From contig OZ241830.1 of assembly GCA_965202585.1 (NCBI GenBank), positions 28,706,001-28,770,000 on the forward strand: DNA of 64,000 nucleotides. The letters are read 5' to 3'. Both the position numbers and the translations under genes were made by a program. The DNA is from Thalia democratica (taxonomy: Eukaryota). Shown piece by piece: positions 19,491 through 54,200 of this stretch (within the stretch, counting starts at the first letter, position 1; each line of letters begins with the position of its first letter). The notes below the pieces were generated by a model. It made no database searches, was not told the DNA's origin, and worked only from the letters and a program-made list of their open reading frames with translations.

Positions 19491-20659
19491 TTTTATTATA
19501 AATCTGCTTGTTATAATGTTTTTACTTAGTGCTTAATTAAATTGAACAATTACGTTTAGTAATATGTATTAAATTTTTACACTAGTAATAGATTAGATAT
19601 AACACTTATTTTAAAACTTATCACTGAATTTGTTATGTTAAGGGCATAAGGGAGGTCAATCACCTTTTTCACAATTTAGTCTTATTTTATTGAGTTGTAA
19701 CTAAGCTATTAGTTGCTTTCTGCAGATTTTAAAAGCTTGAAATATTTTTTAAGATAAAGCTGGTTGAAGTCAGAGACTACAATAATACTAATCAAGTACC
19801 CCCAATACCTAAAACGACTTCTAAAGAGGATTTTCCTTACTTTGAAAAAATGTCAGGCTAAATTGGTCTCAGTCAGGCTAAATAAAAAAAAATTCGCGCA
19901 CGAACCCTAAACTAAGTCTTTTAATAGAGAGTTGGTGGAATTCATGTTGAAATGATTTAAAAATGTAACAAACGTTATAGATTATAGCTTAAGATTAAAG
20001 GTTATACGGTAGGAGCGCTTTATAACTATTCTGTTCATAATACAGAAGAAGTCTCGCATAAGTCTAGACTTGTTGAAAAGGTCCTTGCGGGACGCATAAT
20101 TTTGTAAAAATATATAACAAAAGTATTTATACTTAAATAACCTTTAAAATACACTGCTGTGTGTAAAAAGTATTATTTAGGACATGTGGATATTAATAAT
20201 TTCAAAATATTTGTTGCAGGGAAGCTCAAAATGTATTGTAAAACCTGTATTTATGGTAATAAATATGTATCTTACCAGAGATTTATGCTTGGTAGTTACC
20301 TATTGTAAGTGGACAAATTAGAGATCAGTTTTAATATTCAGAAGTTTCTTATTATTTTACTTAAAAATCAAGTTATGCCTTTGAAAGTTCATAAGAATCA
20401 AAATCTAGGTCCGGTAGTAAGAATTTGGGCTACTGTTGAAATATTTAAGTTTTGTGCTACATAACACTTAAATGTAATTTTATTTTATATCACACGTCAA
20501 ATTAACTACACTACTGAATTTTAGCAGCCTTTGTTTGTACTTTAATACTATAAATCAGGTACATTTCTGCAAATCCTGCAAATCTATAGAAACGTAAAGA
20601 TTTGTGCGAAAAAAATCGCTTTTGTTTCGTTTATTCAGCTTTTAAGACCTTGTTTCTTT

Positions 20660-22849
20660 GGGTAGCTGTCTAAATTGCGCGAGCGTACAAAATTGCACGA
20701 GGGGACAAAATTGCACGAAAACACAAAATTGCACGAAGATACTTTTGCACGAAGACTGATTTGCACGAGAGCACACAATTGCACGAAGATAAAATTGCAC
20801 GTAGACAAAATTGCACGAAGGTTCACTTTTGCACGAAGACACTTTTGCACGAGGGTACATTTTTGCACGAGCAGACAAAGATGCACGCAGACACTTATGC
20901 ACGAAGGGTCAATTTTGCATGAGTGACAATTTAGCACGGAGGGTCAATTTTGCACGAGTTTCGTTTCCTACCCAGGGACGGGTCAAAATTGCGCGTAGAC
21001 ATTTTTGCACGAGGGGACAAAATTGCACGAGAGAACTCTTTTGCACGAAATATAATATATATGTGTATAATATACTTAAAAAAAATTAAAAAAAATAATA
21101 ACTAAATAATAGAAAAATACGACAAAAAACTATATAATATTAAAAAAATAAGTAAAAAATATTAAGTAAAAGTTAAAAAAAAACAATTAAAAATAAAAAA
21201 GTAAATAAATATTTAGTAAAAAAAATAAATTAATAAAAGAAAATATTAGTTACTAGAAAAATAAAAAAAAATGATAGTTTTAAATTTAAAAAAGTTATTT
21301 TTAAGAAAAAAATAAGTATCAAATGTTAAATAGATTTTAGTAAATAATAAAGAAGTCAGAATTTAAAAAATCAAATAACTAAATAATAAATAAATTTTGA
21401 AAAAATCAAAAAATAAAATAGATTTATAAAAATTAATAAATTAAATAATAAATACATAAAATAAAAGTCAAAAACAAAAGTTAATAAAATTATTAAAAAA
21501 AGTTAAAATAAATGAAATAAGTAATTAGAAAAGTTTAAAAGAAATACTAATAATTAAAAAATTCAAAATGAACAAATTAAATAATAAACAAAAATCAATC
21601 AAAAAAAAGTTTATAAAAATAAAAATAAAACTAGATTATAAAATTAGATTCTAACCGTTATTAAAATATAACTACCAAAAAGAGTTTTATTTATACTAAT
21701 AATTTTTTTTGTTAAAATTAGAAATTAAGTAATTCTAGCTGTTGTACTATTATGTTTGTTTTGATTTAGTCAAAAGCTTGTATCTCCTTTTTATTCTAAA
21801 AAAGTAAGAAGAAAATTGCTTCTGTCAGTGCTTTTGCGCAAGTCTGGGTTAGATAAAGAGATAAAACAGAGCAGGAGAAACTTAAGATATAATTAGAGTA
21901 AAACGCGTGGTAATGAAACTAAGATAAAGTTTAGACAAATAGAAAATAATGATATTTAAATTATGTTTAAAATTTTTATAAAAAAAAACAATTTTAAGTA
22001 TAATTTATGGAAGTACACAGCCATAACAGAACTTTCTACACAATGCACAATAAAAATTTCATCAGACGGATTTTCTCCTTTCTAAATTTATTTAATTGAT
22101 TCACTGTTTTGCATGCTCGTTTTTTTTTTTCCAAAAATATCTTCGTGCAATTTTGTCCCCTCGTGCAATTTTGTACGCTCGTGCAATTTTAACACCTACC
22201 CATGTAAATATTATTTATTTTTTATTATTTTTTAATCTTGTTTTATTTTATATTAAAGTTTAGTATGATTTTAATTTAATTAAAGTTTACATCAATACAT
22301 GTTTTTTCTTTAATAAGGGATATTTTTATTAAAATAAAACCCTATTTTTATTTTTATTAAATTTTTTTTTAAATTTTTTATTAGTTTTTAAACACAATAA
22401 TTTAGTTTCAATTTAAAAAAAGCTAAATAAATTAAAAAATGAATAAAATTAATATAAACCTAAATAACTTAAAATTAACTACACTAATACATGCTTATTT
22501 TATTTTTTTTTATAAAATATAAAGGTTTTAATATATTTTTTATTTAGTTATTTTAAGTTAGTACTATTTTGTGCAAAATTGACCCTCCGTGCAAAACTGT
22601 TTGTCGTGCAAAATTGACCTTCCGTGCAAAATTGTAACTCGTGCAAAATTGAGCTTCCGTGCAAATTAGTCTTCGTGCAATTTTGTCCCCTTGTGCAATT
22701 TTGTGCCTGCGTGCAAACTAGTCCTCGTGCAAAAGTATCTTTGTGCAATTTTGTACACTCGTGCAATTTTGTTCTCGTGCAATTTAGTCCCCACGTGCAA
22801 TTTAGTAACCTCGTGCAATTTTGTCTTCGCGCAATTTAGACCCGTTCCC
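20660..22849. mobile_element. Foldback-like non-autonomous DNA transposon (2190 bp) with modular TIRs and 9-bp TSD
   Basis: GGG termini. Arrays of ~17-19-bp (A/T)TTGCACGA subrepeats at 20660-21050, inverted at 22140-22200 and 22570-22849, around an AT-rich core. TGTTTCTTT lies at 20651-20659 and 22850-22858. Confidence 0.85.
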
Positions 22850-25538: not shown

Positions 25539-25731
25539 GTTATTCTTGATTATTTTTTTTTGCAGATTCGTAACTTTTTTGAGCTAGCTACGTCTTTGGT
25601 GTATAATATACCTTTTTATGATTGTTTTATTTGTTTAAATCTGAATAATTAGTTTTAAGAGAAGTATAATCCAGGGACGTAGCTAGCTCAAAAAAGTTAC
25701 GAATCTGCAAAAAAAAATAATCAAGAATAAC
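25539..25731. repeat. Perfect 56-bp inverted repeat with 81-bp spacer
   Basis: 25539-25594 (GTTATTCTTGATT...GAGCTAGCTACGTC) is the exact reverse complement of 25676-25731. Confidence 0.95.
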
Positions 25732-26638
25732 TAAAAAATATATCTAAAGTACCGCTCGTGCAAAAGAGTCGCCGTGCACAAGTGTTCCCTAGTGCAAAAG
25801 TGACCTGTTCCCAATTTAAATACATCACAGCACTTATTTGTTATGCCTAGTTTATATAAAGTAGTCCTGATTGTCATTCATAATTGTTAGTAATATTCAG
25901 TTTCAAATCTAGTTATGGTTTTTAGTATGGAAGTGAAGTATACAATTGTAATGGAATGCATATTTCACATGCTCTTCCTTGTTTTAATGTTAATTGTTTA
26001 AATATTGAATATTGAGTTTTACAAAGTAAGCTCAACCAATGAAGCGTGTAGTTGCACAAAGACATTACAAATATACAGATTTGTGTTATTATCAGATATA
26101 GAGCTTGTACTGAGATATTGCTAAAAGCTATTATTAGTCCTTTTTTTGAGATGCATGTTATTTTTTAGTATGTTTGTTAATTAAGTTAAAATAGTTAATT
26201 CTTTTAGAGTTCATTAAATATTTTATAGTTCACACTGTTTAAAATTTTTAAGTATTTTCAACTTAAACTTGAATTGTTATTTAAGTTTTATTTGTTCCAA
26301 GTTATTTACAAAAGCAACTTATATTTTTGAAACAGTGTTGTTTTAATAGTGTTTTGTGGTTCTTTTTTATAATAGATACATTACCCAATTTGTGTGGTCT
26401 GATTTATATAAAGTAAACTAAAAAACCATCTAGTATTTATAATATTGTAATACATAAGGTAGGATTTAATTATGAAGAGTAGTACCAATAAATTAAAAGT
26501 ACCACAATCCATATCCTAAACAATAACCAACTAATTTATAAATTTATGCAATGCTTACTTTTCTTGGTAGATAACAATTTAAAAACATTTAATCTTGAAT
26601 AGGTTTTAATGATGCTACAAACTAGAAGTTAACTATTT

Positions 26639-27616
26639 CAGGGTTTCCACTTGGTCAGGAAAAGTCAGGAAATCAGGAAAAGTCAGAAAAAATTAAAAAA
26701 AATGACAAAAGTCAGGAAAAAATGGGTGGTTTTGGAAAAAAGTCAGGAAAAGTCAGGAAATTTGATAAAATTAAAATAAAAATTCAGATTTTGTCAGTTT
26801 AAGTTTACAAAATTCCTTGTTTTCCAAAAAGGTAAAAATTAATTAAAAGTCCTTTAAAGTCAGAAAAAAATTCCAAAATTTTCCTAGAAATTTACAAAAA
26901 TATTTAATTTTATTTCCAATGCCTTCACCTGGTATAAATTAGTAAAATATCCTTTATAAAACTGCAAAACCTTTCTATTAACATATTAAACAAATACCCT
27001 ACTTAAACTAGCAGATTTTGTAAGCTTTTTAGTATTGATGATCTGTAGCAAGGACACTTCAATAGTGAAACTGTGATATATACACAAAAGTTTATCTAGC
27101 ATAATTTTAGAATCAAAGTTTTTTTTGTTTAAAAAATTGAGTTCTTTATAACTAAGCAGTTAGTTTAGTATTTTATGTAACAAGTTAAAGTGTATACTTT
27201 ACCTCTTTATAATTTTTTCAAAGTTGTTTAAATTATAAATTAACTTATAAGAGAGGTATATGCCAAGATTAAGTTTACTTATTATTTGTATTTTTTGTAG
27301 AGTAACTTAAGTTTTGAAAGTAAATAAGAGTATATTTATTTGTTACAAATTTTATACTAAATGATAAGAGAAAATATTTTATACAACATCTATATAGTTT
27401 TCTTTTTTATGTCTTTTTTTTTACAGTTACTTAAGTATATTCTTTTTTAATTTAAGGATTTTATATTAAATAGTTCGGGTAGTATTTTATTAAACTAAGT
27501 AAACAATTTAAAGAAGTAAAACTGATTTAGAAAAGTCAGGAAAATTTTGGTAAAAAGTCAGGAAAAAGTCAGGAAAAGTCAGGAAATTTTTCTTATCTTG
27601 ATCAGTGGCAACCATG
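26639..27616. mobile_element. CAGGG-TIR non-autonomous element (978 bp) with 6-bp TSD
   Basis: Ends are CAGGGTTTCCACT...AGTGGCAACCATG, with subterminal AAAAGTCAGGAA repeats at both ends. CTATTT lies at 26633-26638 and 27617-27622. Confidence 0.85.
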
Positions 27617-27737
27617 CTATTTAAATATAGATGTATATAAGTTTTATTCTTGTACTGTGATATACAAATCTTTTACATAAAATAAATTTTACAGTATTTT
27701 AAATTTGATTCTGACATTGTTTAATATTTTGTATATA

Positions 27738-28148
27738 GAGGGTAGCAAAAAAACCTGGGATTTAAATAATTAGGCTACAAAAACCAGGAAAAACTTTGAA
27801 TTTGAGAAATTAAAAAAAAACCTGGAATTTTAAACAAAAATCAATAGAAAACCTGGAATTTTAAACAACTTTTACATACTAATTAGTAAAACTTTGTTTT
27901 GACACAAAAAATCTATCCTAAAGATATTTTTTTTTGTGTACATCAAAAACTTTACTTATTAAAAAAAAAATTTAATAAACATTAAATATAGTTTAAAATA
28001 TCTTTTCAAATGTCGTTATACTATTTAACACAGTTTTTTTACTTCAAACTTAATTTATAACTAAAAGTAGACCCTAAAGCGTATCTTAAAAACTTAGAAA
28101 AAAATTGAAAACCTTGAGATAATTTGCCAAAAACATTTAGTAACTTTG
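27738..28148. mobile_element. Degenerate member of the CAGGG/AAAACCTGGAA MITE family
   Basis: Body aligns by eye with 3385-3771 and 19140-19490. Ends are eroded and no TSD is visible. Confidence 0.6.
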
Positions 28149-28741
28149 TTTGTTCAATATTTTTTATTTATATATTTAAAATATTAATATATTTTTATTT
28201 TGTATCATAATATATTATTTTGCCTTTTATCAAAAACTTCCATAACTTTATTTTTCATTGATGTTTAGTCATATTTTAATTTATCTTTAATCAAGCATTA
28301 AGTCATTATTCAAAATATAAAAATATTTTTTTAATCTTTTAAATAAATTAATTTAGTTTTTTTGAAATTTTATGGGGGACAGGGTATTAAAAATTTGCTA
28401 AGAAAATATTAAGTTTTACTACAGATAAATTGCTTTTAAAAACTGTTTTACGAATGATTTTGTATAAAATTGATGTATGTCTAAATTTTGTTTAACTAAT
28501 TTATTAACTACCATTTATGTGTCCAATATTAACTTTCTTAATAAGATTTGAATGTTTGTTAATTTTCTTTTATGTCGTTAATGTCTTAGTAAAAAACAAA
28601 CAATTAACGTTATTATTTTAACTAAAGTAAACACTATTTTATGTTTAACGTATTCAAAATCAAAATTTTATACAGCAAGTTTTAATTTTTATTAAACCCA
28701 ACTATTTTAGGCTGTGTAAAATTTACTAAAACAAATTTAAT

Positions 28742-30701
28742 ATGGATGGAGATTTGAGTAAGAAATCAGAAAAAACCTCAATCAAACAATGTGTGAGTGA
28801 TGATCGTATTTCCGTGAGAATACACACTAAAAAGGTTTCTGATAAGGAAGAATTGAATTGTAAGTCACACAACTTAATACTAAAAGTTACCTATTAACTT
28901 TATTCTTATGAAGGTTTTAATCAGCAGTAAAATATTAAACATAACTAATATGCTTTAAAAATATTATAATTAAATAAACCATTTTAAAGTATTTACTTGC
29001 TTTTAGTATTTATATTAAGAATTATTCTTATTAACCTTAACAGTCTCTTGACCATAATGTTTACTACTTTCCTATATTTTATTTGTTACTTATTTAAGCT
29101 ATCTATACATTATTTAGGAAAACATTCTTTTAAAGATCAAAGTAAAAGAAATTCAAAAAATTATACTATTTGTCTATAAAAGACGTAAATTTAACGTAAA
29201 ATAGTTTCTTACTTAGTTAAATGAAACATAAAGTATTTGTAATTTTTAATAATTAAATATTCTATTAGTTTTAAAATAAATTTTAAATCTTTAGTTTAAA
29301 AGTTTTTTTTTCAGCTACCAACAACCAAAAGCCAAAATTAGCATCAAATACACCTCCAGTAGTTACTCCAAACTCATCTCAAGCAGTTGCTCCAAATACA
29401 TCTCAAGCAGTTGCTCCAAATACATCTCAAGTAGTTGCTCCTAATACATTTCAAGTAGTTGATCCAAGTACATCTCAAGCAGTTGCTCTATACACACCTC
29501 CAATATTAGCTCAAAATAAACATTCAGTAGCTGATTCAAATATAGCTCCAGTACTTGATCCAAAAACAACTCCAGTATTAGCTCCAAGTAAAGCTTTAGT
29601 ATTAGCTCCAAATACGTCTCAAGTAATTGCTTTATGTACAACTCCAGCAGTTAATTCGAAAAAAGTTATTACAGAGTTGCTTCAAGTGATAAAACAAAAG
29701 AAGTCTGTCCAGTACTTTTATCGAGAACTTCATAAACGTAATTATTTTATTTCTTTTTTTATTATAAAATTTCTAAATTCTAGTAAAAAGTAAAATTTTA
29801 ATTTTAACTAGTAGCTATTTAGGTGTTCCAAAATTTAGGACTCTCGGAAATTTTTTTGTTTAAAGAGTCTAGCGACGATTTAAAAAAATGTCATCAAATA
29901 TTATCAAGACGTTTAAACAGACGCACCGGGTTCGATCGAGTCTTGTGTGATTAAAAACCGTCAAAAAAGATACGAGCTGAAACAACGCGACGTGCCGATG
30001 ACCTGGGAGTTCGCTGAGAGCTGCTTCTTCGCCGGAGAGATGCACGGATACAGATCTGAAGAGTCGGAGTGGCGGTACGAGGAGGCGAGGGAGAAGAACA
30101 AAGAAGTGTGGCGCGAAATCGAGTCTCAGATCAAGCACGAGGTGTTCGGCATGCCCGCCGAGAAGGAACGGAACACTGGCAAGCTTTTTGTTCCCCAGCC
30201 TATTGAAAGTATGTTTTCGAACATTTTGAACATACTGTAGGATAAGTTGAGTCTGTTAAGGGCCATAAGAGTAATTTAAAAAAAACTATTGGTACGAGTT
30301 ACTGTTATTAATTTACACGGTCAAAAATTATATATTATACCACTAAAACCTCTAGTACAAATTTCTACAAGACTTAGCATTATACAAAAATGTTTACAAC
30401 AGAAGATGCGCGGGTCTTAATGAAGAGTGCTTGGCCCTACCACTACGAAGATGGCATTACAAATTGGGTTTTGTGGTTCGGTAATGTGAATGCAAGCGCC
30501 GAAGAAATCAAAGGATGGATAGAACAATACGCTGAACTGGAAGATTTCGATTTGATTGTTTATGAGAACATAAAATATGTTAAAACAGTTCCAGGCATCA
30601 AGCATTTGCAAATACTGGCAAGAAATACTGTACAACCGCAAAGAGAAATTTACTTTCATTGCGACAGTAGTCAAAACTGCTACATTCAGCAAAGATTCTA
30701 A
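28742..30701 (+). CDS. 4-exon gene (375 aa): low-complexity repeat N-terminus plus a DUF3605 (GIG1/Htc1-like, HIT-superfamily) domain
   Basis: Exons 28742-28859, 29315-29737, 29921-30208, 30403-30701, all joined by phase-1 GT-AG introns (1128 nt, no internal stop). Motifs MTWE..RSEESEWRY..W, SAWPYHYEDGITNWVLW and ENIKYVKTVPGIKHLQIL match my recollection of the DUF3605 pattern (W.E..R....Y; NDWPY...HLVVW; N...KSV....H.H). Confidence 0.75.
29360..29640 (+). repeat. 24-bp coding repeat encoding an APNTSQ(A/V)V-type octapeptide in exon 2
   Basis: GTTGCTCCAAATACATCTCAAGCA-type units are in frame, about 5 clear copies followed by degenerate ones. Confidence 0.8.
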
Positions 30702-31306
30702 AAAAACTCAAAAATAAAAAAAATATTTTGTAGATTTTTAATATTTTGATTGAGCTTTAAGAATGTCTATGTGAAACGTATACAAACTATGTTATTTAAA
30801 GCTTTCGAAGTTTATTAAGATATTTTAAATGAAAAACCACTATAAATAAAAACCAAACATTTACAACAAAATTTTTAATACTAATAAAAAGCTAATTACT
30901 AAATTAAATTTAAAACAGCTTTTATCACACTAAATAAATAACATTCTTAATTAATATAAACATTTAAAACAAATAAAGGTATTATTTATAAAATTAAATC
31001 TAAAAAAAGATTTGTAAACATTATAAACAGCTAAACTGCATAGAAAAAAAGACATATTTTATTACAACCGGGTTATCATTAAAAATATGTTAATAAATGA
31101 CGAAAGCTTTGAATATTAAAGTTTGTAATTTTTGACTCAGACACTGACTTTCAAAGTTGTAGAGCATCTTTAAAAACTTAATTATCATCTACAACTGTCT
31201 GAAATATTTGAAATTTGAATTTGTTTTTTCATCTCGTATTTTAAGGCTACTTTGAAACTAAATTTATTTTAATTGCGTTTTACTCGAATAAAAATACATT
31301 CATTAC

Positions 31307-31421
31307 CAGACTTGGTAAAAAGCACTGTATTTAGTGTTAAAATTTACCGGCAGTAGGATTTAAGCTATCTTATCTATCAAAGCCGTGTATTTTTTAACAC
31401 TAGTGCTTTTTACCAAGTCTG
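31307..31421. mobile_element. 115-bp MITE-like element
   Basis: Perfect 20-bp TIR CAGACTTGGTAAAAAGCACT/AGTGCTTTTTACCAAGTCTG. No TSD recognisable. Confidence 0.6.
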
Positions 31422-34400
31422 CTATAAATAGTAGAAAAATAAAATTGTGTTATAGATTTTACTTTTATCGAATTTTATTTAATATTGTTGTACAAAAATA
31501 GCTTCTTTGATAAGTTTTTACTCTTACTTTCTTTCATTCGCAGTATATTTTTCAACAATTGCAATAACGACATCTTTTTGGTAATTTCGGGAATAATTTT
31601 GGCAATAACTAGTAAGGGAGCGAAATTGTAAACTGTTAGTATAACTAGTAAAGAGGCAATGTCTAATAAAGAGTGCGATTATTTTGAAGTTTGTGCCAAG
31701 TGGGCAGTTAAAATAAATAAAGTTTTAAAACGCTGATCTTCAATGTACTTCATCTTTTGTTGTAATAATTCGTTCGGACAAAATGTAATTAAACTCAAAC
31801 GTTGTTTAAGCATATCCATTTTGTTTTAAAAATTGCTTTGAGAATATTAAAAAAATATCATTAGCTCTAAATAAATTGCTTTTGAAGTCAAATAATAAAG
31901 TTTAAATCTGTTTTTGTCATAAATATTTTACTAAAAAATAAGTATTAGAAAAATATAATCATTATAGAAAACTAGAAAACGCTGATCTTCACTTTCTCAT
32001 TTAATGTAATAATTCTTTCGGAACAAGTTTATCAAACGGTTTTTTGTATATCAATAATATAAAGAAATTTTTTTTAGACCATTTGAACAAAATTAACAGT
32101 TCTGATCAAATTTGTTTTATTAAATATAATTTTACCGTAAGGTTACATTTATAATTCAGCATTTAAACAGTAATCTTATATTTTTTAGCATTAAAATATT
32201 ACATAACAGAAAAAATATTCAAATCTCTTTTGCTTGAGATAAAATGATTTTAATAATACTTAAAGTGACTAGGTTTAACAGCAACATGTGAAACGAAGTT
32301 TAAAATAAAATATATAGAATAAGTTTTTTAACAATACAATAAAGTTTGTAACAACAAATGTTACTATTGTGAAAGAGCTGCCTTATTTATTTAAAATATA
32401 AAAATTATAAAACTAATAAGAACCAAATATTAAAGGTAGTACTTGGGTTAAAAAATAGACGTAAATAAGCAAAATTGCCAGAATTTCTGTTTTTCTTCAT
32501 CTAGCTAATATGAATGCATTAACTTTCTTTTGTAAACCAATATGCGTCTAGTCTTGACCAATAAAATTACTTAAGCTTAAGAGGCTTGCTAAATGATGAG
32601 TGTGGTTGAAAAGTTTTGAAACTACTTGTATTTTATAGAACCGCAGACACAACCAACTTTTTATTTCTTTAGTCTTTAATCGTATATTTAAGCAACGCTT
32701 TCAAATAAGACTAAATAGTTTTAAAATCAAAATAAGTACTGACAAACTTTACATAGCACACGAACAAACTAAACATTACAAAATAATATCATTTAAAAAC
32801 TTTTAATTTTTGAAAAAAAAAAGTATACAAACTAGAACTAAACAGAGAGTTTAAAAGAAAGAAGCTGCTAGTAGAAAAATAATATGTGTAATAAAGAAGC
32901 ATGAAAATTAGTTCCAAACTCAGAACTAAATCTCTATTTAAATTCATTGTTACTTTTATGCAGGCGTAGTTGTTTGTGTGATAAACTTTTAGGAGACATG
33001 GTCAATGAAAAAAACATGTTTGATTTTTATCCGCAAGCTGTCGTTGCTGGATACATTAAATCCTCGTTTTAAAATAACTTTTGAAATAAATAAAAACAGT
33101 TTTAAATTGATATGAAACCGGAGAATTAATCATTTAGAAATACCTGTTTTTATATATTTTATATTGTTTTTATGGGTAACATTTTGAATGTCAGGTTCAT
33201 TTCTAAAGTTTGCCTTTGTTTTTACCAGTCTACACATGTCTTTATTTCTTTTAGCTCATAGTTTTATAAATAACAATATGTAACATAAAAACAATAGTAT
33301 AAAGTTGAAATAAACAAAACGGAGTATTGTTTTTTGTAAAACTGGAATAAAAACTTTAGTTAAACGAGTAAACAAAGACAATGGATGTTTCCCTTATTTA
33401 AATATTCTTTTCTTATTTTAGTTTACTATATAATTTATTAAACAGTTGTTAGGAAAATTTATATATGAGTCGAGTAATTTAGATGTCTGTATGATTAAAA
33501 AACTTTGCGCTGGTTGTAAAATTTTTAGTTAGAGCTAAAAATACTCAGAATATTTTTTTTCAAGTGAAATGTTAATTTAAACTTTCCTTATAATCATTTA
33601 TGAAGCTTTACTGTTGATTTTATTACTGTTGTGGCACTTTTCAAACACCTTTTAAAGTTGGTATACTGCAAAACCATTACACAATATATTCTCTTGTATT
33701 TTTAAAATTTGTTATATTTTACTGAACTTAAAAAATTTAACGATTATTATAGTTATTGCTGTTCAAAATTAAGGTTTTATAACTTTTCTCGGATTTCACC
33801 CAGTTTATACACATAATCTAAAATTCTGAAAACAAATTTAGAAACTTTTTATAAAGATCTATCGAAATTTAAATTAAGGGTTAATGATTTGCCTTTTTGA
33901 AGTTATACTTTAAATTTTGGAAAATAAACAATTAAATAATATACGTACGATTTTTTGTTGTGTCTTCAAAAATTTTTTTGTTTTAGTTTGAACTCATAAA
34001 ATGTTAAGAACTGTTTTTTTTATAGTTTCTACACAAAAATTTGTTAGACCTTAATAAATAATATTAAACCATTATAAATAGTTGTTTAAAAATGATTTAC
34101 AGTGTTTCATTTTAGTTGTATTGCTACTTTGAGGAATTTTGAAAGTTTATAAACCTAAAAAATTAATTAAAAGTTTAAGATATTAAAAACTGTTTTTAAA
34201 GCATAAAATCAAAGAACAAGTCGTCTTTTATAGGAAAATAACACTTTGCCCTGTTTCTCATACAACATTTCGAATAACTGTTGATAACGTTGTACAACAG
34301 GAAATCACATATTTCAAAAAAATATATACAAAACACGCGCTAACATTTATGAATGGTTTAAAATAGTTTGGTATTAAAACAATATTTTTCAAATATAAAA

Positions 34401-45200: not shown

Positions 45201-48200
45201 TCATTTGTTACCGCCTAAAAAGCTAAAAGAAAGTTATAAGTATATTCTGTAACGTAAGTTTAAATATAAGTTTAAAAGTCTCAACCATCGTTACGCTCGT
45301 TTTTCTTTTGCAGTGTGCGCCGAGCTGGTTGTCTTGGAAGAGGGAAAGTCCCTAACTTACAACACCGACCTTTTATTAAATTGCCCGAAGCTGACCGTGG
45401 TCACTGGTCCGGGCTGGCGTGTCAGGGCTGTTTTCAACACAAAAAATAATCATTTCTTCGAGGTGGTTTAATTTTTTTAGTTTTATAGTTTTTTTTACAT
45501 AAAATCAATTAAATTAGTTATTTAAAATCAGTTTAGTTATAACTATTAAGAAAAATGAATTAATTTTTTAAGACAAACCTTTTGATACATTCGGGTTATT
45601 TTATTGTGTTAGTATTTTATTTGATATTTATTTGCTTATATTTTATATTTTTATAAATTTAGTCGGATCATTTTAAAGAAGTTTTATTACTATTATTATT
45701 TGTTAAAGACTTTTAAAGGCAAGCTACAACTCCATAAGTTTAAATGTAATTCACAAAACAAATACAAAGATATTTTTTTAGAAAAGTTTTTATTTACGCA
45801 CTAAAAAAAAGTAAACTAAAGTATGTTGTTAGTAAAACAGACAAACCGTACTTTTAATTGATTTTAAGCTTGAAAGTGTTGCTGAAAATACATTTTTGAA
45901 AAAACCTTTAATAAACAGGTTTGTTATACGAAATCAAACGAATCATCCAGTAACAGAATCGGGTATTTCCCCAACGCAGAAACCAACGAATTGACGTCAC
46001 CTTCGCACTACATAACCGTTACGTCATCGAGTAACAGACTTGACTATGACATGAACGTAATCTACTCGTCTGTTATTGGTTAGTACTTTAAAAAGGTTAT
46101 TTTAGGTAAATGTTTTAATATTTATGAAAGTGGTACATGTCTTTATTAAATAAGTTTTGTAGAATTAAAATGTTTTCAAGATAAAAAAAATCATCAAAAA
46201 AGAAAGCTGAAGTTTTGAGAAATGGCTTTTTGAAGAAACACTTGCTATTTTGTATATAAAACGATCCTTTAAAACATTTTAAAGTTTTAAAAGAACTTAA
46301 ATGAGAACTAGTAACTTAATTTGTAGATTTATTTCAGTTAGTTTTAAATTGTTATAGCTTTACAGCTAATATATAAATAATTGGATAGGTCTTAGTTTTA
46401 CCTACTACTTAAGTTTACAGATATTCTTACTAGATTCAAACTAATAATTTGTTTAATATTATATATAAATTTATGAGTTGTCTATTTTATATTATATTGA
46501 GTATCAAAAGTGTGATTTTAAAAACTCGCTTTGTTAAATTTTTGTGTAGTATACTATACATGTAAAAGTTAACACTTTAAATACTAGTAAAAAGTTTCAA
46601 ATAATTTTAATAAAAAAATTATTATAGATGTTAAGGACGATATCAAGCAAAAAGAAGCTCGTAATAAAAGAATTAAAGGTTTGTAAAATATTGTAAAGAA
46701 TGACTTTGTATAAAAATGGAAATTATTTTTAATATTTTAGCTGAATTTAAATTTTGTGCGGGTATAATAAAAAGCTAATCATATTTATTTTCAACTAAAA
46801 TTTAAAATGGCAATCACACATAAATTTTTGTTTACAACTTATTTGCTTAAAATGGTTAAATTATGGTTTTGTGTTTGTTAAAAATGAGAAATACTTTCAT
46901 AATTAGAATTTTCGTGTCTAAAAGTAATTAAAGTTAAGACATAACAGTTTTAGCATTTAAATTTTTTTAATCTGAGTTTTATTAAAATATTTCAAAACAG
47001 TTACGTTTTACATCAATTTTCGCAAAATAACTGAAACCAAACTTAAAGTACGCAAACAAAACTCCTTTAACTAATTTGTAAAAGTATTCAAAATTTACAT
47101 ACACGATATATAATCTAATTATAATCCATAACAAAAACGAAGTAGTATTCATTCACGCTTTTTAAAAGTCTACGAAAAAATATATAAATATACAGTGATA
47201 AACGAGGTGAAACTTTCTGCTGCCTCGAACTTCACCTTCTTGTACTCACCGTCGGATGAACGGGGCAGATATCCGGATAACCAGAACGTTTGGTGGATGA
47301 TCGAGGCCCCGTGGAACCGACACATTCAGCTGCAGCTGTTCCGCTTCCAAACCGAAGACTGCTGCGACTACTTAAAGGTATTATTTTGAATTAAACTATA
47401 TTTAAAAAAAACTTTTTTTAACTTTTGCACATTTATTTTGCTCGGTATTTAAAAAAAAAAGCTTAAGAATTAAGACTGCTGCAAATATTTGAAAGTTTGA
47501 TCATATATCATAAAAAATATTTGATGAACTTGTTTTTTTGAAATATTTGAAATAATTTTTAGTTTTATTTTAAATATTTTACCTTTTTTTCAGCGACTAG
47601 TAAAAAGTTTGATTTTTTTTAATAAACAAATTCAAAGATATGTTCCAAGGTGTTTTCTTGTTTTTGGAAAAAAATAAACAAAATTAAAAATTAGTGTTTT
47701 GCTTTTACGTTATAATTTTGTAAAAAATATAATCAACTTCATAAAAAAAAATATATACCTTTAAATTTACATTCTATTGAAATTTTATTTTTTCACAGAT
47801 ATACTTGTAGTGGCAGCTTGTATAAATACATTTTCAAGAATACTTTTTATGTTGCTCTTTGTTGTTTTTACAATTTTTTTTTTGTACCAAACTCACAGAT
47901 ATACTCGGAGGGGGAGTTTGGTATCCTGCAGGAGGAGAACCTGGTTGCGGAATACAGGGGCCACTACAAACCTGACAACCTGAAAGCGCACCTGATACCT
48001 TCCAGGAGGATATACCTGAATTTCGTTTCGGATAACAAGAAGAACGGGCAAGGATTCATGCTCAGCTATAAGTCAACTGGTAAGAATATGTTGTTTGTTT
48101 TTGTATTTGTTTAGTTTTATTTTCTTTTACGTGTTGTGTTTTATGTCATTGTAGTTTTTTGTGTCGTGTTAATAATTCGTTTGTCTAAACATTAAATAAT

Positions 48201-51200
48201 ATTATTTAATTATAAGACATCAACTTATTTTAGCTTTTCTTGTCTTATAATTCCCAGCTAGCAGTCCCCAGTAAATAGTGTTATTTATTTATTTATTTAT
48301 TTTTAAACCACCTCAATTTTAGTTGTAACCACAGAAGGACAGCAGTGCGGCGGAAACTATTTCATTCATCCGCAAGACAGCGCTACGGAGCTAACGAGCC
48401 TGAATTTCCCGCGCATTTACAACAACGAAGACGACTGCTGGTGGCAGATAGCGACTTCAAGCGGATATAATATCAGGATGGAGGTGAACTTCTTCAACAC
48501 GGAAGACTGCTGCGATAAACTATTTGTTTGTTTTTGTTTTATCTAAAGGTTATTTACGTAACTAATTTTGTAAAGTTTTAGTAAATCTTTGAATTAAATA
48601 AACCTTTTTTATTCTTACCTAGCTAGGTTTCTTGAAGTGTTCTCAAGTGTTTGACTTATTGCTAAATTAACACATTAATTTTGGCTATATTTGATTGTAA
48701 GATGTATTTTTGCATTATTAAAAGAGTCTTTTCAAATATACGATACAACAGAAACCACAACTTTTTTTTACATAAACAAAATAATTAGTATTTTATCCAT
48801 AACTTAAATTAAATTTATACAAAAAAATATTCGACAAAATATACATTAAAGATATACGACACATTGGAGCCGGAGCTCGCCACTTCTCAAAACTTGAACA
48901 GCGTGTTCAGCGGAAACGTGTTCAAACCTTTCCTTGTGACGTCACAACCCTACGTTCTGCTTCACTTCACATCTGACGACTACAATTCGTACCAGGGTTT
49001 CAACATAAGCGTGAGAGCAGGTTAAAAAAAAAAACATTATTAAGTTATTTTTTAATAAAAAGGTACGAATATTTGAAGTATTATTAGATTGGTTGGAGTG
49101 AAAATAAATCTCGTCTCAAGTTTAAATGCTTTTATACATTAGCAATAACGGTTTTTAAAAGAATTCCAATTTTTTTCTTCGTAAAAATATTACTAACAAA
49201 TTCTTAGTTCCTGCCGAGCCGGATGAGGATCATTTTCAAGATCTTCATTACACGGACATAGGAGAGGATTATTATGACAATGAGTTAGGAGAAGCTGTTG
49301 ATGAGAAAGAATTATCAGAAGGAACCAGTGAGTTTCTTATTTGTTTATTTTAATTGCAAGATTTTTACCAAATAAGAAGTTTAAACTGGCTTACACGTTA
49401 AAAACAAACAAAAACGCGTGTGACTTTAATTTGATTTTTGATTTTAAAAGATAATAACTTATTTTTAGTTTCTTTGGTATGGTTCTCATAAAAAAATAGT
49501 TTTTTCTTTAATCTTTAAAACTTATTGTTATAACTAAACACAATAGTTTGTTTAAAACAAGTTTTAAATTAATATATGGTTTTATTCTACCTAAGTTTCT
49601 GAACTTATATTAATAAACTTTCGAATTACAATACTAAATTTCAGAAACAGTTTCCAGTTAACTTATTTAAATGAAACTTTTTAGCTGAAATAAATGTAAT
49701 TTATTGTAGATTGATTCGTTTAAAAACTTGTATACAGCTACTTATCGTAATTTTGTGACATAATAAACTAGTATGTTTTTTGTTCTGTTTATGTATTTTT
49801 ACAATTAGCTTAAAAGTTTAAATTTTTAGTTTCAGCCATTATAGGATAAAACTCAAATCGTAGTTTAATACTTTCTTTTTATAACAAAGTTATTAATGAA
49901 AGAAAAAAAAAAGAAAAAATATAATTGCAATTTTGAAGTAAACAAGAAATGTTTTATAATGTATTAAAATTACTAATATTCAAAGGTACGGACGTATGCG
50001 GACCAATGCAACTCGCAGCCAATCACAAGCAACAAGGAGTGCTGACGTCACCCGGCCACAATGATGACGTCAATTACCCGCCAAATCTGGACTGCAGGTA
50101 ATATACTGAGTTTCGCTAAGACTTTCCTCAACAATTGCTTTACTTATTTTATCATTATAAAAAAACAAATAAAGAACGACTCAATTACTTTCGTAGCTAT
50201 CTATCAGCTACGCTTTAATTTAAAAAATACTACCTGATGACGTAAATAACCTGCCATTTCAGGTGGACCATAACCGCGCCTGAAAACATGAAGGTTCTCA
50301 TCAGGGTGTACGCAAATTTCGAAACCGAAGAGTGCTGCGATAAGTTGAAGGTTGGGTTTTGTTTTGTGTTATTTTGTTTACCTTATATGGTTAGAATCAA
50401 GCTAATTGATGTTTTGTTATCGTTTCTTTTATGGATTCTTCATTACTACTATGAATAGTTTTTTAACTTTAATAAATTTAACTTTTGTTAATTAAGTTAA
50501 CTAATTTAAATAAGTTATAGCAATTAAGATCAAATTATGTTAATTAAGTTAATTAATTTAAATAAGTTATAGCAATTAAGATCAACGTAAAAATATGTAG
50601 ATCTACTTAAAAAACAAATGTTGTTGTAATTTAACTAAACAAGTGTACAACGACTACAAAACAAAGGCTTGTTAAACTGAGGACATACTAAACTATTTTT
50701 TTTCTACATACCAAAATTTTCCTTAATGTGTATATCTTTTGAAGTGAAAAGTAAAAGATAAAAAATAACATAAGTGCAAAATAATAAATACAAACTGTTT
50801 TCTCTGTTTTTTATAACTATCTTATTGTTTATGTAAAACTATAAAACTTGTAAACTCATGTTTAAAAAAATTTATCCAGATATACAACGTTATGGACGTG
50901 AACGACTACAAAAACACGGACAACCCCATGGTGGTCTCAGGTTTCAGGCGGGAGTCCATCCTGTACATGTCCGGGTTCAACTACGTCGACCTCTCGTTCA
51001 CCACCGACGCCAGGGGGCAGCACAGGGGGTGGCTGCTGACGTACGAGGCCGTGAACCCGCTCGATTACGAAGGAGAACTGGTGGATGTAGAAGGTTCGTT
51101 TGTTTTAATTCTTTTTTTATTATGTTTTTAACAAGGTCGGATTCGTACATTTTTCACACTTGAGTTAGCTTTCAAGCCAACGAAATTTTGTTTTGAACAG

Positions 51201-54200
51201 CGGCAACGCGTAATGACGTCATAAGGTTTGGGAAGCTATGTAAGTATTGGTGATTGCTCAATTCTTTTTGCTTTTTAATACTTGCAATATGCATACTTTA
51301 AAATATAGTACAATAATGTCTGGAGCAAACTTATTATTAAATTTAATTATCAATGATGTTACCAAGAATCAGCACCAGTTGTAAGTTCAATAACTTCAAA
51401 GAATCTTCAACTAGTTGTTTAACTATGCTACATATGTCCTGTGAACCGGGAAATATTTCCCCAATGAACACTGCACTGTTTAAAAGTTGTAGTACATACG
51501 TAATAGATACTAAAAAAGTCAGACGTCTCAGATAATTAACTAAGTTTACCCATTAACATGCTAACTGTTAAGATAAGTACGCACAAACCAATTAAGGTTT
51601 GAATAGTGTGCTGTAGTAACAGTATAACTTGAGAGACTAAATAAACAAATAAATAAATAAATATATATATACCTGATAAGTTTTTAATTACCTATCATGG
51701 TTTGCAAAACACAACAATTAACTCGCAAGGTAAATAAACATCCTAAGTGTTTTAGTTCAACTAAATATACATATTTGTTTTACCCATTAAAGTTATTGTG
51801 TTTTTGGGGTCGTAGTTTTTTTATTTTAATTTTTCATTATTACAAACAATAACAACATGCAGAGTATAAAAGGTACGATATCACTGACCTGGTGGCAACC
51901 GATCATCCGAACAACCTGACCACCCCCGGTTTTCCGTACGGACCCAAGATCAACATCGAGTGCTGGTGGGTTATCCAGACTCACACCAACAAGTCGGTGC
52001 ATCTCAACTTCCACGATTTCGAAACTTGGGGTAACGAGCTTGAGGTTTGTTGATGAAACTTGTAGTGATAATGAGCTTTGTTTACTTTTATTGAAGAACT
52101 TGGAGTTTGTTAACACTTTTTATGTATGAAAGTTTTTCAGCCTATTTTACCTTTTAACGAAATAGAAGTTTGTTGAGTTTACACTTGTAATAATATAATT
52201 TATATAAAAGAAAGTTGGTAGGCAGTTATTTACTAAGGACTTGCTGATTTTAACTCAATATAGTTTTTAATTATTGTTTGCTGATTACTAAATGCATGAA
52301 TTACGGAATTTTTTTTTTTTTCACGAAACAAGAGGTAACGTGTTAGAGGCTAGTTGGGTTTTTCGCTGGTAATGATTAGAAAAATATAAACGAAGCTAAG
52401 GGTAAGGAGCTTATTTAGTATTATTAAACAGGTAACAAATTGATAATATTTCAATTTGCAAAAATGTATTCGCTTTTTAAAAATTTTAACTCACTTTTAT
52501 TACGAAGCTTAAAATTTAGTTTATACTTTATTTACATATATGTGTAATTTTGTTGTGTGTTTTACTTGCTTCACTAGTAAACTTAAAATTTGCTAATTTT
52601 AACTAAGTATTTTATTAACTATTATAATTTTTTTTTCTCTATACATTTGCGTTTTGTTTTCTAGCTTAGTTACATTGACTAGCTCCAATTTAAACATGTT
52701 TTCTTTGTTTGCATTAACAATTTTAAGTAGTTTTTAACTACTTTTCATAGAAAAGTTTTCAAGAGTTGCAAATAAAGTAAAATATTTTGTTTGTTTTTAT
52801 TCGTCTAGAGAAATTATAAACTTTATTTTTAGGTTGCAAATATTTTTTACACTTTTAAAAAATTTCACGACCAGATATAAAAACTACAAATTTTATCATT
52901 AGTGAATGTCAATATTTACTAATTTTAACACTTAATGTACTTAAATATACTGTCTTTAAAAAATTCAACAAAATAATTTTTTTATAAGGTAAACTTAGCT
53001 AAAAGCGGGTAAAGTCAGTAAAAAGGTAGCGTTTCAAAAACTTGTTGCTTTATATGGTTTTCATGTTTCCTTTAAAAGGCTAACAAAAACCTAAAATCTG
53101 AAACAGTTTTAGTTATCACCTGGTCTTTTATTTAAATTTGGCCTAATTTGAGTTTTAAACCTTATGTCGGAAACATACGAAAATAACTGACACTACATAG
53201 AACAAATGCTCAAAGTTTTCAACTACCTTTTTATTTTCAGACACACAAAGTTCTAAAACGCAAAAGTTGTGTGTAAATTCTTTATTATATTGTTACAGTT
53301 ACATGAAAGTAGTTTACCTTGATAAGTTTACTGATAAAGAGACTAAATGTCTTACAATAATTAAAAGCTTGTACAATAAAAACAGAATAAACTCTACTTA
53401 TTTCACTCAAACAAAAAGTACGTTTGTTTGCATACTATAATACTAATTACCTTGTTCACAGTTTTACGCATAACTGTCTATAATAGAGCCATGCTAAAAT
53501 TACTTATTTTGTTAAATCTTAAAAACTTACACTTTTCAAAGCATGTGTAGCACAAACATAAATAAAGTGTTTTACAGTTTTACGCATCGCGAACGATAGA
53601 GGGCGCAAGTGAGCAGAACCTCGTTTTATCGCTGCAGGAATCACAGGTGCGACCCGGGTTCAATCTATTAAGCAGGGACTCCTTCATTACCATGCACTTC
53701 AAGTCGCGTGACAACTACGGACAGAGGGTGGCGTTCTGGATCACGTACACGGCTAAAGGTGACGTCATAGTAGTAAAATTTTCTTTAAAAAAAGTATATG
53801 TAATACGTATATTTTTTATATTTACTGTAAAACAAAAGCAACATGTTGCATATGTCTTACACCTAAAATTTGAAACTTTAGGTAGTTTGCAAAATTATGT
53901 TTATTTATAAAACTGAACCAAAGTTTACTGTTTGTACAAAAAAACTTGTTATACTTTTAACCAAGTAAAAAAATTAACTGCACTGTACAATTACGAGATT
54001 TGATAAAAGTTATTGAAACAAAGCAATATCGACAAGGAGAAGTGACGTCATAGTCAAGTTTTCCAGCAGTATCATAATTAAACGTTGTTTGCAAAATATT
54101 TTCAAAGTTTTTCTCAACAACTAATAAACTACTACTAGTTTTAAACAGAATGTGTAATACAAAGTTAAATTACTTCTCTACTTCTAAATTTTTTATAGTA

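Follow-up and report, generated by a model that had tools for sequence, protein, structure and literature searches.

Introduction

The HTC proteins ('histidine triad with channel'; Pfam DUF3605) form a family of more than 900 members in eukaryotes and giant viruses, for which a crystal structure and two yeast phenotypes are on record. In the founding member, yeast HTC1 (YPL067C; PDB: 5KCI), the triad His104/His166/His168 is dispersed over ∼60 residues, an anion lies beside His166, His168 and residue 154, and a channel through the protein has been described, for this structure only. In vitro, HTC1 suppresses the formation of amyloid, and polyglutamine toxicity is worse in its null mutant. GIG1 of Candida is induced by N-acetylglucosamine (GlcNAc) and affects the sensitivity to nikkomycin Z. 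Here, we have analysed a stretch of 64,000 nt from Thalia democratica (assembly GCA_965202585.1, contig OZ241830.1, positions 28,706,001-28,770,000, forward strand), hereafter the window, which lies at 28.7 Mb on the sixth contig of an 801.8-Mb genome. We show that it holds an intact four-exon gene of this marine planktonic animal, and that the predicted product is an HTC/DUF3605 protein.

We consider it likely that the gene encodes a real member of the family with a reduced triad, a repeat N-terminus and, probably, a pocket for a phosphate-bearing ligand, and that it belongs to an old lineage-specific expansion.

Results

A four-exon gene with a predicted HTC domain

Joining 28742-28859, 29315-29737, 29921-30208 and 30403-30701 on the forward strand gives a 1128-nt frame of 375 codons and a TAA stop (30699-30701). 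All three introns are GT...AG and in phase 1, so that the exons join in frame. The four phase-consistent exons and the 375-residue product that a preliminary description of this DNA had put forward were reproduced exactly, and its motif order was found again as TWEF...YRS...Y in exon 3 and as WPY...WVLW and YEN..KTVPGIKHLQ in exon 4. The features of the gene are as follows.

28742..28859 (+): exon 1; ATG start, 39 codons plus one base, charged N-terminus without a signal-peptide-like segment
28860..29314 (+): intron 1; GT...AG, phase 1; 11-17 stops per frame; covered by DNA contigs of independent runs
29315..29737 (+): exon 2; low-complexity, rich in P/A/V/T/S/N; open in 6 of 6 near-copies
29345..29631 (+): tandem array in exon 2; 24-nt unit encoding 8 residues, APNTSQxV-like, ∼12 copies
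29738..29920 (+): intron 2; GT...AG, phase 1; splice sites kept in 6 of 6 near-copies
29921..30208 (+): exon 3; a basic linker, then the first (N-terminal) half of the HTC/DUF3605 domain, with the family-conserved W209 and R225; GC 0.535, GC at third codon positions (GC3) 0.69
30209..30402 (+): intron 3; GT...AG, phase 1; interrupts the domain, at a position and in a phase also found in paralogue clades and in a marine relative
30403..30701 (+): exon 4; second (C-terminal) half of the HTC domain, followed by the tail of the protein and the stop
30713..30718 (+): AATAAA, 12 nt past the stop; may serve as a poly(A) signal, though the evidence is weak in a genome of 26% GC

An in-frame TAA lies 15 nt upstream of the exon 1 start, and the acceptor of intron 2 is the sole one past the in-frame stop that opens the domain frame. 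Exons 1 and 2 together have no stop in 180 codons, with 17 and 14 stops in the other two frames, and the introns of the gene carry 7-11 stops per 100 codons. Over at least 83 substitution events no stop has arisen in these two exons, where 3.5 would be expected (P about 0.03). GC content is 0.33, 0.36, 0.535 and 0.39 in exons 1 to 4, and GC3 is 0.31, 0.11, 0.69 and 0.40, which bears out the earlier remark on the GC-rich codons of exon 3; the window as a whole has 26% GC. Exons and introns alike are covered by DNA contigs of three public runs from two studies. Since these independent runs span both, the locus is genomic and no artefact of the assembly.

Membership in the family was tested with a local profile hidden Markov model made from 11 PF12239-bearing proteins, all of them outside the clade of the window gene. 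The spliced 375-residue model scored 76.7 bits (E 2e-22), its residues 208-352 aligning with positions 6-154 of the 154 in the profile; shuffles of the spliced domain reached at most 8.3 bits against the same profile (n = 2000). Exon 4 by itself scored 64.8 bits against the local canonical DUF3605 profile. The assignment to DUF3605 made in the preliminary description is thus significant over the whole domain by the local profile, the Pfam profile having been run on single exons. In the ESM Atlas, 34 top clusters are DUF3605, and both exon 4 and the relative P0026 fall among DUF3605 clusters of Mucoromycota, Oomycota, diatoms and Nucleocytoviricota. Comparison of exon 4 with solved structures by sequence gave nothing meaningful.

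An exhaustive phmmer search with exon 4 among 1.84 billion representatives returned only 14 matches. The top one, P0001 (Aphanomyces, 2356 residues, E 6e-29), was rejected as a spurious coiled-coil tandem repeat: it consists of 22 units that score ∼5.8 bits apiece, and no domain was detected with the canonical DUF3605 profile. The best real matches, P0002 and P0003, are 59% identical. From their clusters come four contiguous proteins (P0025, of 438 residues, P0026, P0034 and P0035) that align with residues ∼193-365 of the model at 51-55% identity (E 1e-62), without a gap at the joint of exons 3 and 4. A word-indexed protein search with region 262-438 of P0025 gave no matches, and one with the alignment A1 gave 21. 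The closest outside sequences derive from Tara Oceans marine metagenomes.

Copies of the gene and selection on the domain

A DNA search of the animal's own genome found five further full-length copies of the 2.3-kb stretch, together with partial and more diverged ones. One near-copy has 94% DNA identity and lies on another chromosome; the remaining four, at 90-91%, sit at 64.8-65.5 Mb on the chromosome of the window. In none of the six copies has the start codon or a splice site been lost, and the reading frame stays open across the four exons; the start and the GT donor of exon 1 are kept in 6 of 6. The ratio of nonsynonymous to synonymous divergence (dN/dS) among the near-copies is 0.10-0.38 in the domain exons. 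The domain is under purifying selection.

The gene sits in a larger duplicated unit.

25746..32460 (strand not assigned): duplication unit with the gene; ∼5.7 kb less an insertion; 90-92% identity to the four copies at 64.8-65.5 Mb

With the copy on the other chromosome, the window shares ∼20 kb by blastn. Carriage of the 5.7-kb unit by a transposon was considered and rejected, there being no terminal repeats and no transposon open reading frames (ORFs); at its bounds we found no terminal direct or inverted repeats, and in it no other ORF of at least 75 residues. An insertion of ∼980 bp (26638-27617) in the unit is missing from the paralogous copies; close to each of its ends it has short repeats of the GTCAGGAAAA type. 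A hairpin (25539-25731) stands immediately before the left edge of the unit (25746); its arms, of 67 nt each, are 94% complementary and separated by 59 nt, and it may be akin to a miniature inverted-repeat transposable element. It was also observed that the synonymous divergence (dS) of the domain exons, 0.09-0.22, exceeds the intron divergence between the same copies, 0.03-0.10 (29921-30701 and its five near-copies, L014-L018); a faster mutation of the CpG-rich exon 3, or gene conversion in the introns, may account for the excess.

A profile search of the genome gave 103 matches, which make up ∼60 loci with the C-terminal half of the domain and ∼40 detectable N-terminal halves; exon 3 matches profile positions 5-83. 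Wherever both halves were found they were separate matches, i.e. split by an intron, and the loci are clustered on several chromosomes. The window gene is therefore one of ∼60 loci, and belongs to a young sub-cluster of at least six near-copies, the product of segmental and tandem duplications in which the unit measured 5.7-20 kb.

The repeat N-terminus and an intron shared with relatives

The array in exon 2 has a period of 24, 12.0 copies and 73% matches in Tandem Repeats Finder, and was recovered as repeat family D1 in a repeat search. Among the near-copies the length of exon 2 varies only in multiples of 24 nt. A resemblance between YFYRELHK at the end of exon 2 and YHYRPEL in relatives was dropped and is not used here, since 357 and 516 of 1000 shuffles did equally well and the match thus lacks significance.

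Two contigs of the same or a very close organism, L009 (transcript-type, from a sample of the Joint Genome Institute, JGI) and L037 (genomic, from ENA), allow an intron to be read by direct comparison. A 591-bp GT...AG intron is removed between CCT ATT GAG A and AG GAC ATG, at the codon and phase of intron 3 of the window gene (CCT ATT GAA A / AA GAT GCG). A cluster on chromosome 8, which is 43-46% identical in exon 4, also has a phase 1 intron there, its split codon lying 10 residues before [W/F]PY as in the window gene and in the L037/L009 relative. The L037/L009 relative carries a long, unrelated Arg/Ser-rich low-complexity N-terminus in the same ORF as the domain, from which we conclude that a variable repeat N-terminus before the domain is a shared architecture. 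Transcripts of relatives, P0025 (438 residues) and P0034 (225 residues), have long low-complexity N-termini in the domain ORF.

Intron content differs among the relatives in two further respects. The L037/L009 pair has an extra intron in the equivalent of exon 3 (L037 264, L009 984-985, within the GYR codons), which the window gene does not have. P0036, on contig L012 from a Tara project whose samples we take to be DNA, runs uninterrupted across the position of intron 3, so that this relative may be without the intron.

Predicted fold and active-site residues

The structure was predicted for P0026, a 55%-identical relative, aligned with 25 relatives. The model has a mean predicted local distance difference test score of 92.5 and a predicted template modelling (TM) score of 0.87. 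Searched with Foldseek against the PDB, it gave one significant match, yeast HTC1 (5KCI; E 1.7e-5, TM 0.63), the very protein with which the preliminary description had linked the gene; against Swiss-Prot it matched only YPL067C and Candida GIG1. The fold predicted by this proxy is that of HTC1, a HIT-like core with an N-terminal helical part.

In the alignment with HTC1, VVH(104)LVLW and FH(166)AH(168)V of the yeast protein correspond to ITN(297)WVLW and KH(344)LQ(346)IL of the window protein, and three sites can be placed on the DNA.

30462..30464 (+): Asn297, at the position of HTC1 triad His104 (HTC1 alignment, column table)
30567..30569 (+): Asn332 of the F/Y-E-N motif, aligned with HTC1 residue 154, which lies next to the bound anion
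30603..30611 (+): His344-Leu-Gln346, aligned with HTC1 His166-x-His168

All 35 family rows have a histidine at the position of His344. In the columns of the anion pocket, Asn is found at the position of Asn332 in 33 of 35 rows and Lys at that of Lys337 (K-[ST]-[IV]) likewise in 33 of 35, and the window protein keeps both. Across the ∼60 copies of this genome the triad takes four states, H..H.H, N..H.H, H..H.Q and N..H.Q; a paralogue on chromosome 6 at 61.58 Mb, for one, has the full triad. N..H.Q is fixed in all nine own copies of the window clade and in P0026, P0034, P0035 and P0037. Asn replaces the distal His in both the window clade and the chromosome-8 clade, while the third His has become Gln in the window clade and at least two further times in other clades. 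The HIT motif H-phi-H-phi-H-phi-phi reads I-K-H-L-Q-I-L here, with its flanking histidines missing.

The preliminary description had read the H-x-Q as the arrangement of the GalT branch of HIT proteins and as a hint of nucleotidyl transfer. In GalT the arrangement is His166-x-Gln168. The observation itself was right and the likeness is formally apt, but a full H-x-H-x-Q is missing. Tandem HIT-like half-domains were not found either, the closest structural similarity is not to GalT, and the fold resembles GalT no further than in the HIT core that both have, so that the hint is unsupported.

Phylogeny and base composition

A maximum-likelihood tree was made of 35 rows, 17 of the ∼60 own loci and 18 outside sequences, with midpoint root and unlabelled taxa. 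The loci of this genome fall into at least four clades, each beside marine environmental sequences and with identities down to 25% (25-46%); P0043, for instance, is a near relative of a chromosome-5 locus. Together with their neighbours they make one clade of 26 rows (support 80/75). Because each own clade stands beside marine sequences, the radiation is older than the split from those relatives.

Base composition was considered as a signal of transfer and discarded. Native exons of a neighbouring CUB-domain gene reach GC peaks of 0.58 over 200 bp at 50894 (50894-51093) and 55038 (55038-55237), with GC3 of 0.62-0.72, and the peak of exon 3 is also 0.58. The mRNA of a relative shows the same pattern, a domain of GC3 0.82 within AT-rich untranslated regions. 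Scans of IMG/VR with P0026 and exon 4 found no close relative, and there was no near-identical non-animal sequence among the 1.84 billion representatives. The best outside match, at 59% identity, likewise bears introns. No reviewed animal protein with the fold was found in Swiss-Prot, and since the only matches there were YPL067C and GIG1, well-reviewed model animals show no such fold.

Two contigs, L038 (11.6 kb) and L040 (6.9 kb), carry full-triad DUF3605 genes; they are gene-dense and apparently intron-free, with many ORFs without a Pfam match, and also hold genes for an AAA ATPase, a patatin, a glutamine amidotransferase and an Arf/Ras GTPase. Judged by their gene density they are probably giant-virus contigs.

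Other features of the window and the genome

The CUB-domain gene mentioned above is a multi-exon gene at 47800-60400 (+), with CUB-domain exons at, e.g. 55015-55266 and 59520-59759, several of GC 0.51-0.58 and with GC3 up to 0.72. At 62123-62746 (both strands) an ORF of 207 residues made of tandem MNRQLLK-type heptads faces one of 164 residues on the opposite strand, a coding-looking minisatellite. A patch of GC 0.345 at 20600-21100 (both strands) has four overlapping ORFs of 83-100 residues and short FVQ/CTRA-type repeats, and is probably a tandem repeat and not a gene. Elsewhere in the genome, Wnt-domain exons match densely at C6:75.06-75.21 Mb and C4:79.46-79.65 Mb, which points to Wnt genes in tandem arrays. 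The many Wnt exons of the genome, together with the CUB-domain exons downstream of the gene, mark the host as an animal. A search of the genome for a GH6 domain, as a sign of a tunicate, gave no match, and neither did its controls.

Discussion

We propose that the window protein consists of two parts. The first ∼190 residues would form a charged head, ∼12 copies of the 8-residue P/A/V/T/S/N repeat and a basic linker, which evolve fast and are probably disordered; this variable region would tune localisation or partners. The last ∼165 residues would be the HTC domain, with a HIT-like alpha+beta fold that binds a phosphate-bearing, nucleotide-type ligand in its channel. The invariant His, Asn and Lys around the anion site of HTC1, taken with the selection on the domain, are the grounds for reading a phosphate-ligand pocket. 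That the domain is catalytic is somewhat less probable than an even chance; if it is, the reaction would pass through a phosphoryl or nucleotidyl group held covalently on the histidine, Gln346 and Asn297 donating hydrogen bonds, and otherwise the domain would act as a binder of a ligand or a peptide end. The N-terminus is charged by inspection and has no hydrophobic signal-like segment, so that an intracellular protein is to be expected. The protein is probably intracellular, and the link with extracellular polysaccharide metabolism that had been suggested for the gene finds no support.

Several observations weigh against this proposal. Only single exons were run against the Pfam profile, the spliced protein being tested with the local profile instead; exon 4 reached 16.7 bits (E 0.009), under the cut-off of 23.6, and exon 3 had no Pfam match. 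The relatives P0026 and P0036 pass that cut-off with 24.0 and 32.2 bits, the former only narrowly. The fold comes from the 55%-identical relative P0026. With Asn297/His344/Gln346 only the middle histidine of the dispersed triad is kept, and as two of three histidines are gone, catalysis may be lost. His344 would fall on the nucleophilic histidine of HIT enzymes (HINT1 His112, ecHinT His101, FHIT His96) when the ends of the structural alignments are taken as anchors (model 156 to HINT1 120, 156 to ecHinT 109, 157 to FHIT 105), a mapping that presumes an ungapped last strand. No biochemical activity is known for any family member. The three public runs carrying the stretch are all DNA and none RNA, and contain no exon-exon joints. 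Because dN/dS in exons 1 and 2 is 0.8-1.9 among the near-copies, i.e. near 1, it is frame conservation that has to carry the coding role of these exons.

Where the gene came from can be weighed on this evidence. The preliminary description offered it as a candidate for horizontal acquisition or patchy retention, and inferred a domesticated foreign gene with host-type introns and GC-rich codons in exon 3. Read as a recent transfer, it would have come from a fungus, a protist or a virus and then gained its introns, with exon 3 as a remnant of the donor's composition. The composition of exon 3 (GC 0.535 and GC3 0.69 in a 26% GC window), the mostly fungal, protist and viral membership of the atlas clusters and the missing reviewed animal protein with the fold would agree with this; but the neighbouring CUB exons are just as GC-rich, with 200-bp peaks of 0.58, so that GC content marks nothing foreign. 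A recent transfer should be nested in a donor clade with few similar copies in the host. What we found instead are ∼60 loci in at least four clades at 25-46% identity that predate the split from marine relatives, an intron whose position and phase are common to the window clade, the chromosome-8 clade and a relative, nearest matches that are 59% identical and intron-bearing, and no close relative in IMG/VR. Composition, copy number, the shared intron, the old clades and the lack of a close donor together exclude a recent transfer for practical purposes, and this origin is largely refuted and extremely improbable. The HTC family is a long-term resident of this animal lineage and not a recent import. 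Its ultimate origin is either an ancient transfer, or vertical inheritance with later losses in most animals. The former, in which a single HTC gene of giant-virus (Nucleocytoviricota) or protist origin entered an ancestor of the lineage, acquired introns and multiplied to ∼60 loci, is a possibility that we hold to be unlikely on balance. A DUF3605 cluster in which Nucleocytoviricota predominate is the best structural neighbour in the ESM Atlas (TM 0.74/0.85) and also heads the feature matches of exon 4; the tree groups the animal-type clade with P0010, P0045, P0046 and P0014 (91/98); P0010 and P0045 lie on gene-dense, apparently intron-free, giant-virus-like contigs with AAA ATPase, patatin and Arf/Ras genes; and model animals are without the fold. 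On the other hand, the rows of this midpoint-rooted tree were chosen by shared words and have long branches and unlabelled taxa, the giant-virus identity of the P0010 and P0045 contigs is deduced from gene density, and viruses often take host genes, so that the tree does not decide the direction of any transfer. AFDB cluster matches include many cellular eukaryotes as well. The top ones, which from their accession prefixes we take to be choanoflagellate and rotifer, would fit vertical holozoan descent. A more elaborate scenario is quite improbable, namely that an ancestor took the gene from a giant virus, or lost one to it, and that the gene, having gained introns, gave rise to a lineage-specific family of ∼60, with a fast-evolving repeat N-terminus before a triad-reduced (N..H.Q) HIT-like pocket, which would sense or degrade nucleotide-type signals, e.g. 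in antiviral defence; the tandem clusters, the changes in copy number and the N-terminal dN/dS near or above 1 might suggest it.

What the protein does, and how far it extends, can be read in other ways too. A nucleotidyl transferase of the GalT kind, with nucleotide sugars such as uridine diphosphate-GlcNAc as substrates and tied to extracellular polysaccharide, would make sense of the Gln two residues after the histidine at the nucleophile position, as in His166-x-Gln168 of GalT, and of the co-regulation of fungal GIG1 with GlcNAc catabolism. Yet the full H-x-H-x-Q and a GalT-like fold are both missing, as described above, and the swap of His to Gln recurs within the family, which leaves this function very improbable. 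A domain that is no enzyme, its channel only accommodating a ligand or the end of an unfolded peptide, with the repeat region as spacer or scaffold, deserves more weight, though we regard it as doubtful. Just one of the three triad histidines is kept, HTC1 suppresses amyloid in vitro and has been proposed to bind protein termini in its channel, and purifying selection is compatible with binding; against this, the retained histidine is invariant in every family member and is the equivalent of the nucleophile, the exchanges to Gln and Asn retain hydrogen-bonding to phosphate, and the chaperone idea for HTC1 comes from in-vitro assays and docking only. Lastly, the true gene might consist of exons 3 and 4, read from Met207 (∼169 residues), with exons 1 and 2 untranslated or a separate repeat ORF, or this copy might be silent. 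An ATG does stand just before the domain (MTWEF), dN/dS is ∼1 in exons 1 and 2, the upstream YFYR/YHYR similarity is not significant (357 of 1000 shuffles being equal), and the public runs holding the stretch are all DNA. This is nevertheless improbable: the 180-codon frame of exons 1 and 2, in DNA of 36% GC, is open in 6 of 6 copies, in all six of which the splice sites are conserved and indels come only in multiples of 24 nt; the three phase 1 introns join the exons in frame; and the P0025 and P0034 transcripts have long low-complexity N-termini in the domain ORF. We therefore keep to the four-exon gene and to a triad-reduced HTC protein, probably with a phosphate-ligand pocket.

The gene is otherwise an ordinary member of a lineage-specific expansion. 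The value of that expansion is that ∼60 copies in four triad states, under purifying selection and with one invariant histidine, amount to a natural mutational series that pinpoints the residue to test, and the paralogues are material toward finding the ligand of the HTC family. In this 26% GC genome a high GC content belongs to conserved native exons and is no mark of foreign DNA, which bears on every composition-based claim of transfer made for the genome.

We would like to close by comparing the window protein with the known systems. With Asn/His/Gln the window protein departs from HTC1, whose triad His104/His166/His168 is complete. HTC1 comprises a single domain (198 residues), while the window gene adds a repeat-rich N-terminus of ∼190 residues, three introns and ∼60 loci; the yeast gene is presumably single-copy. 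The proxy P0026 is only 17-19% identical to HTC1. Candida albicans GIG1 (Q59VM7) has the same family and fold (Foldseek E 5.6e-5) and is defined by its GlcNAc induction and nikkomycin Z sensitivity; for the animal gene there is no link to GlcNAc. Unlike the canonical HIT enzymes (HINT1/2, ecHinT, FHIT, DcpS, aprataxin and Ap4A phosphorylase), the window protein is without H-phi-H-phi-H-phi-phi; the triad is dispersed in HTC proteins and keeps one histidine here, and an extra N-terminal helical half, encoded by exon 3, is predicted to form one side of the channel. With the GalT branch (H-x-H-x-Q) it shares the Gln two residues past the putative nucleophilic histidine. The DUF3605 proteins of Nucleocytoviricota include its best predicted-structure neighbour in the ESM Atlas (TM 0.74/0.85 over 143 residues) and are the nearest outgroup rows in the tree, but the viral-type sequences P0010 and P0045 have a full H...H-x-H triad, with neither introns nor a repeat region at the N-terminus, and over exon 4 their identity does not exceed 33%.

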